Origin: Pavona decussata
Taxonomy: Eukaryota
DNA length: 64,000 nt
Direction of reading: 5' to 3'
Assembly: GCA_977016875.1 (NCBI GenBank)
Contig: CDRNST010000218.1
Coordinates: 1,302,001-1,366,000 of the forward strand
This document shows, piece after piece, positions 25,256-30,311 of the stretch; the stretch's first letter is position 1; each line of letters begins with the position of its first letter. Position numbers and translations under genes: made by a program. The notes beneath the pieces are model-generated. The model saw only the letters and a program-made list of their open reading frames with translations, had not been told where the DNA came from and did no database searches.

Positions 25256-25425
25256 AGTAGTAATATAGGGACCACTGAGGCCGGAAAAATGCTGAGGAAA
25301 TGCTGAGGAAAAGCTGAGGGAAAGCTGAGGCATCTCATTACAGTGCTGAGGCATCTCATTACAGTGCTGAGGCATCTTATTACAATGCTGAGGCATCTCA
25401 GTACAGTGCTGAGGCATCTCATTAC
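25256..25425 (+). repeat. left TIR with ~5 copies of GCTGAGGCATCTCATTACAGT
   Basis: Reverse complement of 30169-30311 plus extra repeat units. Confidence 0.93.
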
Positions 25426-25647
25426 TGTCCGTTAGGTGACATCATTATTTATTCTTACTACCAGGATTGGTTGTCTCTAAAAAACAAATGCGTTTATTGG
25501 TTGCCTCTTTTTGAGGAGGCACTCTGATTGGTTATGTCTATGTCGATTGTTATGAAGGAATGAAACCGAACACACCAGCCATGGCGTCACTCCACCATTG
25601 GAATTTCATAGTCCTACTGCTTTTTTCTACGATTGTATTAATTTAGG

Positions 25648-26222
25648 ATGGTTCCAAACATGCAAGTCGAATCGGCCGCTACACCTCTGTTGACAGAAGA
25701 TAAAGCAAGTTCCTTACCCGGTCAGTTCTGCCCGTTTCATCTCCGCTCAACGTTGGAATTGGTAGAAAAAGCGCAAAGATATAGCTATGTTTACTGTCCC
25801 GAGAAAATGTGCTTTATGTTTGCCCCTGCTTCAGAATGGAAAGAGTACATAGAGCGTATCGCCATCATACACACTCTGATGTGAAAAAGTATGCAGCTCA
25901 GTTGGTCTGTGATTGCTCTAACAAACTAGCATTGAGAAAAAGTAAACAACCCTGGAGCCAGGATCGCATGTTTCTGACGTGCCACAAAAAAGAGTGTAAC
26001 TTTTTCATGTGGATAGACCAGACAATATCGCATGCTATCAAGGAGCGGCTCTTATATTCACCTAAGCCACGGTTCACAAGATTCCATCCTTATAGAGAGA
26101 TAAAGGAGATGTTTGAAAATCATCGCCAAGAGGTTAAACAGAAAGGACTTATTCAGCGCCAGCGCCATGCACGCAAATATGACGAAGGATTTTTAATGGT
26201 GACAATGGATTCAACAGTCTAG
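25648..26222 (+). pseudogene. GRF-type zinc-finger protein, probably one gene with a frameshift ~25860
   Basis: CDC...LRKSKQPWSQDRMFLTC...ECNFFMWID matches the zf-GRF pattern. The overlapping upstream ORF has CPFH...CPEKMC. Confidence 0.6.
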
Positions 26223-26263
26223 GAAGTCCTAAAATATTTCACGGTCTTAGATACAGAAAATGG

Positions 26264-26527
26264 ATGGACGAAGTATGGGAATCTTACAAGTTTTATGTCC
26301 AAAAAATGAAAGAAGACTGTCGAGACGACCCAGATCCTACACTTTGTTTAGAGAAAGACAATTTGCTGCGTCAGGCGTATTTCAAGTACGCAAGTGATGA
26401 CGGCCATCATCCCGAAAGTTTCCAAGTGTTAAAGGTTTTATATGAAAGACATATTGAAGGCAAACACGTACCTTTTGAAGGTTATGTCATCAGCCCCGAA
26501 GAACATGAAGAGATAGCAAGAGATTAA
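26264..26527 (+). CDS. hypothetical 87-aa protein of the Polinton-like element
   Basis: ATG-initiated ORF with protein-like composition; no motif recognised. Confidence 0.4.
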   Translation: MDEVWESYKFYVQKMKEDCRDDPDPTLCLEKDNLLRQAYFKYASDDGHHPESFQVLKVLYERHIEGKHVPFEGYVISPEEHEEIARD

Positions 26528-27405
26528 CAGTTATCTTCTTATTCTAGAGCTTTTGCACGAGATTTACGCAGATCAAAATGTATTGCTATGCTTAATAATA
26601 TAAGGAACCAAGATCTTCCTGTTTGTTCTAATTAAAAATATTGCATTACCGTCTGTGTGGACATAGAGCTGTCTTGAGATCCTTTGAAAGATTTTTAAAG
26701 TTTTTGAGTGAAATAAAGTTTTATTCATCTTTACACCGCGTGAGTCACTAATTATATTTAACAAATGTTTGACTCGAGCTCTAAAATTTGCATGTGAATT
26801 ATCTCGTGTGTCTTTTGTTTGAGAAACAATAAGTCATATCCAATACCTACCCTGATTGGGTAGTCCCAGAGTCAGTGTCTATAACAATACCTGAACCGGC
26901 TAGACGCAAGCTATTTGATGCGAAATCTTCGTCCACTTCGATTTTCAGACCGTCAGTTCCTTAACAACATGGCCAGCAAGTTTACTGTTGGTACCCCAAA
27001 CACCCTCGGAAAAATGTAGAATAGTGATATTGAAATTGAATATCGGAAACTATTAGCGACCTGTTTCAAAACCATGAACGGAACAAGGGAATTATCACAG
27101 AGAGCTTGTAAGGCAATTAAAACTTAGCGACGTGCGACACCCACGCGTGTGTCTGAGAAAAATAAAGACACATGACTAGAAATGGCCCGTTCGTCTCCTT
27201 TTGTCCCTTTTGGCGTGGTTTTGACCTTTCAGGCCTGGTTATGGCCTTTCAGGCCTGTGTTTGGCCTGGTTATGGCCTTTCTGGTCTTCTTTTATTTATG
27301 AAGGAGAACGCTTAGTAACCCCGCCTTCATCAATTTTCTATAAAACAGACGCGTTACTTTCTGAAGTTTAGTTTCCTGTCAGAAGGCGTGCGGTTCAAAC
27401 CAAAG

Positions 27406-27882
27406 ATGACGAGCACAAACTATACCTTATACCTGCAACAAGGTGCTGGAAATGATGAAGACAGTGAAGAAAGCGATTTCTCCCAAGAAAGCGAAGTTTC
27501 TAGTCAAGGAACGGAGTCTTCCCAAGAAGAAGAAGAAACAGAAAACTTAGAGCCGTGGTCACGCATTCTTGATGAAGCCGAGAACCGCCACAAGACCCAG
27601 CTTAACGCTTTGATCAATCAATACCAAGAAAACGGCGATTCAGAAAATGTGGCTCGTAGTAAAGCCGTTAACGCTCTCGTTCCTGTTTACAGAAAAGAGC
27701 TGAGAAAAGTGCTCTTAGAGAATCTACAATGGATGCGTGCAATGAAAAAAGATCCCACCTTCAAAAAAGTGATGGAAACTCAAAAAGAGCTTAAAGACAC
27801 AGAAGGATTTGATTGGTTGGAGTCGACGGAACTTGCTATCGATAAGCGAAAATTCTTACTCAATCGATTATACGAAAACTGA
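27406..27882 (+). CDS. hypothetical protein (acidic N-terminus, helical C-terminus)
   Basis: ORF preceded by TATAAAA (27339) and followed by AATAAA (~27971). Confidence 0.6.
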   Translation: MTSTNYTLYLQQGAGNDEDSEESDFSQESEVSSQGTESSQEEEETENLEPWSRILDEAENRHKTQLNALINQYQENGDSENVARSKAVNALVPVYRKELRKVLLENLQWMRAMKKDPTFKKVMETQKELKDTEGFDWLESTELAIDKRKFLLNRLYEN

Positions 27883-28409
27883 GCAGCCCATTCCACAAGA
27901 TCAAGACTAAACCTACTATGAATGTTATGGAATTTTTATTATTTCCTGGACCTTTGAATTGTTGCATTTCAATAAAACTGTAAACGACCAAACTTTAAGT
28001 GTGTTGATTGATGACTTGAAAATAAAAACAATAATAGTAAACTTGTACAATAAATACGAAATCTGAAATTTGAAATATGAATCACTAAAGCATGATCAAA
28101 ACTTTTTAATTAGACACTGTTATTTGTGATGACACTGTTAAATAAATATGATGATTCCAAAGTTGAGAGCTGTTGCGTGACTAGCGACGCGCGACACCCA
28201 CGCGTGTTTCTGAGAAAAATAATAATAATAATAAAAAAAACATATTACTACCAATGGCCCGTTTGTCTCCTTTTGTCCCTTTTGGTGTGGTTTTGGCCTT
28301 GCAGGCCTGGTTATGGCCTTTCTGGACTGTGCTTGGCCCTTCTGACACTCTATATAACCTGACAATTTGCGAAAAAGATGTCATTTGTGTTCAGTCACCA
28401 AACTGTCAA

Positions 28410-28782
28410 CATGGTTTACAAGAGAGTTTGCAGAAACTGTCCGATTCCATCGTGCGGGGCGAAGTACCTTGTCAGATTAGCTAACCATCTCGCGGATGTT
28501 CATCAGTTAGAGCACACACAGCGAAGACAGTATTTACAAGAGGCAAAACTGCAACCTAAAGTTAAAGTCGTAGTTTACGAAAGTGAAGCGGATAATTCCG
28601 GAAAAAATCACTATCACAATCCAGTACAGACACAAGAAACGGTGTACGAACTGTCAAGACAACGGAGAAATGAGGCCTCTTTTAAAGCAAAAACTAAAAG
28701 ACCGACTACAAAGAACAAGGCAAACCGCAAGAAACAAAGAAAGTGGAACTCTTGGCTTAGAGGCCATAGGAAAATTGTGTAG
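28410..28782 (+). CDS. small basic protein with C2H2-like finger
   Basis: CPIPSC...LANHLADVH and a K/R-rich tail. TATATAA at 28351; AATAAA at ~28812. Confidence 0.6.
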
Positions 28783-29334
28783 ACACGGAAGGAATATTTA
28801 TTATTCCTCGAAATAAAACGAAAAACAAAAAACGGATTTGATATAGTTAGTCAAATGATTCATTTTCATTCCTTTTCCTTTCAAATCGCACTGTATTTGA
28901 CTCTTTTTGTCATTGTTTTTTAATAAAGTTTTTAAAACGGTATCTCTTGTCTGGTTCTATTGCTAACAATTATAAGTCGCGTGTTTCCATTGATCCTTGT
29001 TAAGTTATATGAAATTGATTATAAACTAATGCGTCAAGATACTCCCTTGGGGTTTTTCCAGCAGATCTGAACTCATTTTTATGCAACTTTAGGTTCGTGA
29101 ACCCGCATAATTAACTGACTAACGGTGCGTAAAACGCTGAGACTTAATAGTTTTTTTTTTCATTTCCTCGAGATAGATAGGAGGAAAAAAAGCCACACAT
29201 AGATAGGTTTAGGCGCATCAACGATTTATTAGGACTCAGAAAATGAACTTAACACTGATATACAATCAAATTGTTTTTCAAGAAAACTGTCAGCATGAGT
29301 ATCACAAATCAAATAAACGCATCTGTTTTCCTCA

Positions 29335-30015
29335 TCACTGCTCGATAACCCCGTTTTGTCTTTGCAGTTTTGGTCGTGAATTCGCTGAGAGCGTATTTGA
29401 AACGGGTTCGCCTTTTGGAGCAATAGCGACTTGTTGTGGCTCTTCTTGTTTTCTGACAATGGTTTCAGGGCATTGTGCTTCAACTTGGCTGTCCATTTCC
29501 ATACCACCGCAATCTTTCCATTTCAATTCACTGGGACCGTAGTAAATGGCATACAGAATGCGATCTTGCAGCTGTTTCGGTTGAACGATTTCACTGAATC
29601 CTTCGAGTTCCAACGAAGTAAGATAAATGCTGGTCCAAGGGAACTTTGGCAGCTCGGTCACGTATGTTTCCCACGACTTTCCCAGCTTAAAGCCAAGCGC
29701 ACTGCATACACTCTCGGCGGTTTTTAGGACGAGATTCAGATCAATGTTTTCCACCACATCATCTCGGAAATAAAACCAAGCATCTTCGCTATCAATCATC
29801 AGGCAGGAGTGCTGTCTTTGACTTGGGTGGTGAATAGCGCAACCGTTACAGCGATTTAGTTTTTCTTCTTGGATAAGTGCGTCAAACAACGCAGCGTAAG
29901 TGAGCTGGAACACATGACCAACAAGACTTGCTATCTTCTGCCTTTGGATTTGTTCCACTTCGTCTACTGTCAGAAGAGGTTTAGGCGTCGATTCGACTTG
30001 AACGTTTGGAACCAT
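29335..30015 (-). CDS. hypothetical protein with CxxCxxxHPSQxxHxC motif
   Basis: ~226-aa ORF from ATG 30015 containing CNGCAIHHPSQRQHSCL. Confidence 0.65.
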   Translation of the reverse strand: MVPNVQVESTPKPLLTVDEVEQIQRQKIASLVGHVFQLTYAALFDALIQEEKLNRCNGCAIHHPSQRQHSCLMIDSEDAWFYFRDDVVENIDLNLVLKTAESVCSALGFKLGKSWETYVTELPKFPWTSIYLTSLELEGFSEIVQPKQLQDRILYAIYYGPSELKWKDCGGMEMDSQVEAQCPETIVRKQEEPQQVAIAPKGEPVSNTLSANSRPKLQRQNGVIEQ

Positions 30016-30168
30016 CCTTGCAGAATATAGCAGCGATAAAATAATCTTTACTCGAGTTTGTGACAAGAATGAGGCTGTTTAACGGTCTCTGGTCTTTTAT
30101 TGAGATAAAAGAATAGATTTTTTTGTAAAAGCCAATCAGGGTGAAGGTAAACAATGGGACAAGTCCAG

Positions 30169-30311
30169 GCATGCCTCAGCTTTGTAATGAGATGCCTCAG
30201 CATTGTAATGAGATGCCTCAGCACTGTAATGAGATGCCTCAGCTTTCCCTCAGCTCTTCCTCAGCATTTCCTCAGCATTTTTCCGGCCTCAGTGGTCCCT
30301 ATATTACTACT
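30169..30311 (-). repeat. right TIR with ~3.5 copies of the 21-bp unit
   Basis: Reverse complement of the left end. Confidence 0.93.

Follow-up and report, generated by a model that had tools for sequence, protein, structure and literature searches.

Positions 25256-30311 of a 64-kb window of the Pavona decussata genome (assembly GCA_977016875.1, contig CDRNST010000218.1, positions 1,302,001 to 1,366,000 of the forward strand; the window is the whole stretch of DNA analysed here) are occupied by a real, cleanly inserted mobile element of 5,056 bp. It lies within the pol gene of a Gypsy-like retrotransposon and carries four genes, here named the GRF gene, M1, M2 and HPSQ. The element is a copy of a multicopy stony-coral family whose members are small (about 2-5 kb) and non-autonomous and combine Polinton/Maverick-type ends with a gene set of their own.

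Read directly from the sequence, the termini are 5'-AGTAGT...ACTACT-3', and a perfect 6-bp target-site duplication (TSD), GGCCAT, abuts both ends at 25250-25255 and 30312-30317, as measured in this one copy. Neither the element nor its duplications is assigned a strand. The next base outward on each side is non-complementary, so the boundary of the element is exact. An exact match to the first 27 nt of the element turns up in the window two times, one inverted relative to the other, against zero expected in shuffled sequence. The window contains no N, and the element is present in it as a single copy.

The near-identical part of the terminal inverted repeats (TIRs) is 141 nt long (25256-25396 on the plus strand, 30171-30311 on the minus strand), with 4 mismatches (97% complementary). 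Weaker inverted similarity continues inward to ~450 nt on the left and ~355 nt on the right. An earlier note, made from the letters of this stretch, had described AGTAGT...ACTACT termini, a perfect GGCCAT duplication and near-identical TIRs of ~145 bp. Termini and duplication stand as described; the inverted ends are real as well, their near-identical part being the shorter 141 nt with its 4 mismatches.

Both ends are built alike. The terminal AGTAGT is (AGT)2, a 3-nt tandem repeat found at both ends of the element, and it opens a stretch of 31 unique nt that is followed inward by four copies of an 11-nt unit and then by copies of a 21-nt unit (4.9 on the left, 3.5 on the right). The left subterminal arrays span 25287-25425 on the plus strand (11-nt unit at 25287-25330, 21-nt unit at 25324-25425; Tandem Repeats Finder and direct repeats), and one copy of the 21-nt unit, at 25324-25344, reads GCTGAGGCATCTCATTACAGT. 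On the right, Tandem Repeats Finder places the 21-nt unit at 30171-30243 and the 11-nt unit at 30237-30280, before the 31-nt unique end. All the left arrays contain the heptamer GCTGAGG, which, as a result of the 11-nt and 21-nt arrays, recurs about eight to nine times per end.

Further inward, an inverted block at 25645-25705 on the plus strand mirrors 29958-30018 (82-84% complementary) and contains the start codons of the two outermost genes, the GRF gene and HPSQ. Because of this mirrored block, the two genes have their first ~18 codons in common, and 14 of the first 19 residues are identical in translation. The four genes have promoter-like regions of their own, and the outermost two start inside the extended inverted repeat.

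The element splits a host Gypsy-like pol (24928-31861, minus strand) that is itself in several open reading frame (ORF) pieces, recognised by the Pfam domains RVT_1, RT_RNaseH and Integrase_H2C2. Reverse transcriptase and RNase H domains flank the insertion on its right and the integrase zinc-binding domain on its left; all three are encoded on the minus strand. In both flanks the duplicated hexamer is read in the same frame, as Trp-Pro, and the two flanks adjoin, within one codon, when aligned to a second Gypsy pol of the window. The split domains, in-frame flanks and adjoining alignment bear out the clean integration into a Gypsy pol that had been proposed for this site.

Gene content of the element

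Three of the genes are open and one is broken. The leftmost, a double zinc-ribbon/GRF gene at 25648-26635 on the plus strand, differs from its relatives by two frameshifts and one in-frame stop. Relatives identified by exhaustive search read through at the frame changes of the window copy and align to it in three successive frames, which shows that the window gene is broken; most database relatives are also fragmentary. The gene accounts for the sole Pfam match in the element, a weak hit to Zn_ribbon_GRF (E 1.7e-4) below the curated cut-off. The earlier note had counted about five small ORFs. The number of genes is four, since this one broken gene accounts for its zf-GRF ORF and the two ORFs next to it.

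M1 (27406-27882, plus strand) encodes a protein of 158 aa. Alignment and the AlphaFold2 (AF2) model give it an acidic, Ser/Glu-rich and disordered N-terminus followed by a helical domain, in which a helical hairpin is modelled with a predicted local distance difference test score (pLDDT) of 85-93 over residues ~60-100; the overall pLDDT of the model is 60. Its C-terminus is a few residues shorter than in most relatives, a variant common to a 75-member cluster. M2 (28378-28782, plus strand) encodes 134 aa with one C2H2-like finger, C-x4-C-x10-H-x4-H, and a basic Lys/Arg-rich tail. Identity among its homologous clusters is 70-96%, and the Cys and His columns are conserved in the alignment.

The two genes are preceded by copies of the same module of ~160 nt, at 27125-27290 for M1 and 28182-28340 for M2 (both plus strand), which direct repeat analysis and blastn identify as duplicates of each other (81.5% over 157 nt). 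Each copy is followed by a TATA-like box, TATAAAA at 27339-27345 and TATATAA at 28352-28358. The module also contains 20-nt repeats of the GGCCTGG... type.

HPSQ (29335-30015, minus strand) encodes 226 aa with the motif C-x2-C...H-P-S-Q..H-x-C, invariant in the alignments. It is predicted to be all-helical in an AF2 model of low confidence (pLDDT 53). Its promoter region (30020-30170, minus strand) was delimited in an alignment of four right ends and includes a CCAAT box, at 30132-30136 on the plus strand. The stretch 30038-30145 matches the related coral loci L002, L019, L035 and L043 (blastn) and is thus conserved beyond the window.

Most relatives of HPSQ (P0002 and others) are 209 aa long and end in a short, different C-terminal stretch resembling a small second exon. 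The window protein and the P0001 cluster read on unspliced to 226 aa, and no counterpart of the short exon was detected in the window copy. A gene model of Oculina patagonica (P0040, 395 aa) fuses an HPSQ-type N-terminal part to an M1-type C-terminal part; either the two genes lie on the same strand in that genome, unlike in the window, or the model merges neighbours.

Pfam, PDB sequence profiles and fold searches detected no polymerase, integrase, protease, packaging ATPase or capsid gene in the element, and within the reach of these methods they confirm the lack of Polinton core ORFs reported before. Compared with PDB sequences, the profiles of HPSQ, M1 and M2 returned nothing meaningful, and M2 also has no Pfam match. 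Fold searches of the HPSQ and M1 AF2 models against PDB and BFVD gave no match at E <= 0.001. Across the 64-kb window, Pfam found no polymerase, retroviral-type integrase, protease, ATPase or capsid of the Polinton kind; the rve matches belong to Gypsy pol.

A multicopy family in stony corals

The open genes have many relatives. Searches yielded 269 homologous protein clusters for HPSQ, 416 for M2 and 667 for M1, and the 90%-identity clusters that hold the window's own proteins comprise 10, 74 and 75 distinct members, respectively. The exact M1, M2 and HPSQ proteins of the window are present in the public collection on a 522-kb ENA contig, and their clusters have members on many different contigs of Mb scale. 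Named homologues come from stony corals only (Desmophyllum pertusum, Oculina patagonica, Porites lobata and P. evermanni).

Fifty related loci, all coral metagenome contigs found by a scan with the M1 alignment, come from a coral lineage further removed. In 11 of the 50, M1 is closely preceded by M2 on the same strand, and one locus (L014) has M2, M1 and a convergent HPSQ. The order is reversed relative to the window, where M1 precedes M2. None of the 50 loci has the GRF gene. Twelve of these M1-bearing loci are 5-11 kb long. Pfam found no core gene among 160 ORFs of at least 100 aa from the 50 loci, which gave only reverse transcriptase, one THAP domain and one weak integrase-core fragment resembling that of Gypsy.

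The right end of the window copy was aligned with those of L014, L019 and L002, and the terminal sequences were then searched for in the related loci. The ...ACTACT end is present in six related copies (L003, L009, L016, L019, L027 and L014), where it gives way to six unrelated flanks, and the 30-100 nt inside it have diverged from the window sequence. A conserved end in unrelated flanks with a diverged interior indicates that (AGT)2 is itself conserved and that the family has inserted at many sites. The six ends also corroborate, from outside the window, the boundary of the element, and with the hundreds of protein clusters they mark the family as multicopy. Neither left ends nor matching duplications were found in the related loci, and no locus has both ends.

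The HPSQ body is missing from 4-5 of the six related copies with a right end. One of them (L019) is a ~2.1-kb derivative that retains part of M1 only, and its inverted ends of ~830 nt include the HPSQ promoter and first codons. Inside these ends lie arrays of the hexamer GTATAG (L019 1-120 and 2086-2122; >15 units on the left, ~6 on the right) that look like a repeat-expansion hot spot in the end region.

Other inverted repeats among the loci were considered and set aside. Those in L010, L020 and L026 are not ends of this element family, and the repeat in L013 (359-4929) is an inverted duplication of the M2-M1 pair rather than a pair of termini. Its arms of ~1.4 kb are 94% identical and end just past the M1 stop codons, and one arm has a 300-nt palindromic insert. 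Family members also lie in repeat-rich surroundings; in L004 (329-8763), ORFs of a non-long-terminal-repeat retrotransposon (endonuclease and reverse transcriptase) stand directly beside the M1 copy.

Ratios of nonsynonymous to synonymous substitution (dN/dS) were calculated by the Nei-Gojobori method on natural copies as they stand. For M1 the median is 0.18 (range 0.12-0.32, n=13 comparisons) at a dS of about 1, and for HPSQ the values are 0.12-0.17. M2 has a pN of 0.20-0.34 against a saturated pS of 0.78-0.98. For recent copies in the metagenome coral, three comparisons give a dN/dS of about 0.5-0.6. The low ratios indicate that the three open genes are under purifying selection and have been kept functional over the long term, unlike passive debris. 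The earlier note had called for this check on dN/dS, and its outcome is purifying selection on M1, M2 and HPSQ.

Surroundings in the window

The other large ORFs of the window belong to a second Gypsy, a Crypton-like recombinase and pogo-like transposases (Pfam). The second Gypsy-like element (7883-13363, plus strand) has an open pol of 1,103 aa with protease, reverse transcriptase, RNase H and integrase, preceded by two ORFs without a Pfam match. Its amino-acid identity with the interrupted Gypsy is 40-49%, too distant for use as a nucleotide-level empty site. A 451-aa ORF at 39806-41161 (minus strand) combines ALOG and phage-integrase-type tyrosine recombinase domains and looks Crypton-like.

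Two pogo/Tigger-like DDE_1 transposase genes lie on the plus strand. That at 50503-52887 is an open ORF of 794 aa with HTH_psq, and that at 55365-56773 is in two ORF pieces and has Brinker/Tc5 DNA-binding domains. Two large overlapping ORFs of 309 and 376 aa at 33799-35845 (minus strand) have no Pfam match. Rfam and tRNA scans of 24000-32000 were empty, and a scan for bacterial promoters and terminators, irrelevant to a eukaryote, remained at chance level.

Origin of the element and comparison with known systems

Polintons are 15-20 kb long and have 6-bp duplications, inverted ends of 100-1000 bp and a terminal tandem repeat of 1-3 bp that has been linked to protein-primed replication (PMC4196379). 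The 6-bp duplication and long inverted ends are typical of them (PMC3014272), and 6 bp is their duplication value among integrase-related groups (PMC10045372). The coral element shares with Polintons/Mavericks the 6-bp TSD, TIRs within 100-1000 bp, the 5'-AG start, the terminal tandem repeat and an animal host rich in such elements. It thus has every end feature that marks a Polinton; the earlier note had recognised the termini and the duplication as such. In size and gene content it has none of their marks, being 5,056 bp rather than 15-20 kb long, without core genes (neither protein-primed polymerase nor retroviral-type integrase, nor the capsid module of major and minor capsid proteins, packaging ATPase and maturation protease) and with four genes that match no known Polinton gene.

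Possible helpers are at hand. Stony-coral genomes hold hundreds to thousands of polintoviruses, which carry many unannotated accessory genes (PMC11131425). Small elements would have escaped the repeat search of that survey, which was limited to loops of 15 kb or more (PMC11131425). We propose that the element would be integrated in trans by an integrase that cuts with a 6-bp stagger, and polintoviruses, abundant as they are in these genomes, would be its likeliest source. Their protein-primed polymerase may also copy the element from its AGTAGT ends. Integration in trans by resident polintoviruses, possibly with replication in trans, is the best-supported mechanism and in our judgement falls just on the probable side, the architecture of the ends being its whole basis.

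The proteins of the element (GRF/zinc-ribbon, C2H2-like basic, acidic helical and zinc-binding helical) are most likely DNA-binding proteins or adaptors. They would help the element to exploit its helper or to control its own expression, and the GCTGAGG repeats may be candidate binding sites for them. Selection on its genes suggests that a satellite lineage describes the element better than passive debris does. The earlier note had supposed a satellite or defective virus-like element. Part of this stands, as the element is mobile, multicopy and under selection, with Polinton-type ends and no core genes; one of its genes is broken. The satellite reading is plausible, if unproven. The fuller version, in which stony corals would harbour a lineage of polintovirus satellites with selected DNA-binding or adaptor proteins that exploit the replication, integration and perhaps packaging of a helper, is a tentative one that we hold to be possible rather than probable.

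Several observations weigh against the explanation as a non-autonomous element mobilised by polintoviruses. The 6-bp duplication is known from a single copy, and no related locus spans both ends. Pfam, PDB sequence and fold searches matched none of the four genes to any Polinton or viral protein, and with structure models of such low confidence (pLDDT 53 and 60) the negative fold search is weak evidence. Arrays of short subterminal repeats are typical also of cut-and-paste transposons. Selection could equally reflect self-sufficient machinery that goes unrecognised. The rule that Polinton termini begin with 5'-AG reportedly comes from Kapitonov and Jurka in 2006.

The element could instead be a plain internal-deletion derivative of a resident full-length Polinton, with the four genes as end-proximal accessory genes of the parent that survive only through the sparing of the ends; a separate satellite lineage would then not exist. 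Deletion derivatives retain their ends and whatever adjoins them, coral polintoviruses are rich in unannotated accessory genes (PMC11131425), and some M1 homologues lie on contigs of 10-16 kb in short-contig assemblies. The family also sheds genes readily, as the loss of the HPSQ body from most right-end copies and the partial M1 of the ~2.1-kb derivative attest. Against this, none of the 50 M1-bearing loci, twelve of them 5-11 kb in length, has a core gene. In another coral the small gene set is still linked, and purifying selection at a dS of about 1 is unexpected for passive debris. The commonest accessory genes of coral polintoviruses (DUF5679, VLTF3 and antirepressor) are matched by no ORF of the element. 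We regard such a derivative as unlikely.

Equally unlikely, in our view, is an undescribed group of inverted-repeat transposons unrelated to Polintons, moved by an unrecognised enzyme of its own or by another integrase-like transposase with a 6-bp duplication. Such a group would account for the lack of homology to anything viral, for genes that are conserved and selected because the element needs them, and for subterminal arrays that resemble transposase-binding sites; IS3EU/GingerRoot, found in coral and sea anemone, also makes 6-bp duplications (PMC10045372, PMC6839031). Yet that group and Dada are excluded by termini, inverted ends and targets (PMC10045372, PMC3706591). The largest protein of the element, at ~200 aa and predicted with low confidence to be all-helical, is unlike an RNase H-fold transposase or a tyrosine recombinase, and many copies lack HPSQ and the GRF gene. 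The element might, at the extreme, not be mobile at all, and its single copy in the window would fit an inverted duplication that arose by chance, or an artefact of assembly, within a retrotransposon. Against this stand 27-nt ends of which chance predicts none, an exact 6-bp duplication with a chance of about 1 in 4,096, an interrupted pol whose frame continues on both sides and a window without N. The hundreds of homologous copies and the six conserved ends in different flanks already refute it, and we give it next to no credence.

Should the satellite reading be true, the family would be an animal counterpart of the transpovirons of mimiviruses and of other virus satellites. Polintons are regarded either as whole virus-like elements or as remnants of decay. 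A family in high copy number with only the ends of a Polinton and private, selected genes would add a layer of parasitism on animal polintoviruses and would account for some of the unannotated repeats in coral genomes. Four orphan protein families, so far 'hypothetical protein' in Desmophyllum, Oculina and Porites, would gain a context. Surveys that demand 15-kb loops and hallmark genes miss this class of element altogether.

Non-autonomous Polintons are listed in Repbase and are described as deletion products. The coral element resembles them in having Polinton-type ends without core genes, and differs in a gene set of its own that is conserved between coral lineages and under selection. The term itself appears in PMC5499653 and PMC3014272. 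The cargo-carrying Mavericks of nematodes (Widen et al. 2023, to the extent that they are portrayed in PMC11131425, which cites them) are likewise Polinton-type elements with non-core genes. As portrayed, they are full-length elements with host cargo, whereas the coral element is cargo only.

With IS3EU/GingerRoot the element shares the 6-bp duplication, inverted ends and a cnidarian host. Members of that group have termini TA..TA, occasionally TG..CA in GingerRoot (PMC10045372), and occur in coral and sea anemone (PMC10045372, PMC6839031). An identity with them was rejected, as the element has AG..CT termini and no integrase-like transposase. Dada elements have no terminal inverted repeats and target small-RNA genes (PMC3706591), and were rejected on account of the 141-nt inverted ends and the Gypsy pol target. 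Miniature inverted-repeat transposable elements, which have inverted ends and a duplication without any coding capacity, were rejected as well; the coral element has both of these features, but between its ends lie three open genes under selection.

The nearest analogue in lifestyle is offered by the transpovirons, which are linear-type elements ~7 kb long, with inverted ends, no capsid, a zinc-ribbon gene and a helicase-polymerase fusion (PMC5499653). Like them, the coral element is small, has inverted ends, lacks a capsid, carries a handful of small genes including a zinc-ribbon gene, and integrates (PMC5499653). The transpoviron helicase, fused to an inactivated polymerase domain, is absent from the element (Pfam), and the hosts differ, transpovirons residing in giant viruses of amoebae and the coral element in an animal. 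Transpovirons depend on a larger virus, as the coral element would under the proposed mechanism, and the likeness between the two systems is put forward as an analogy.

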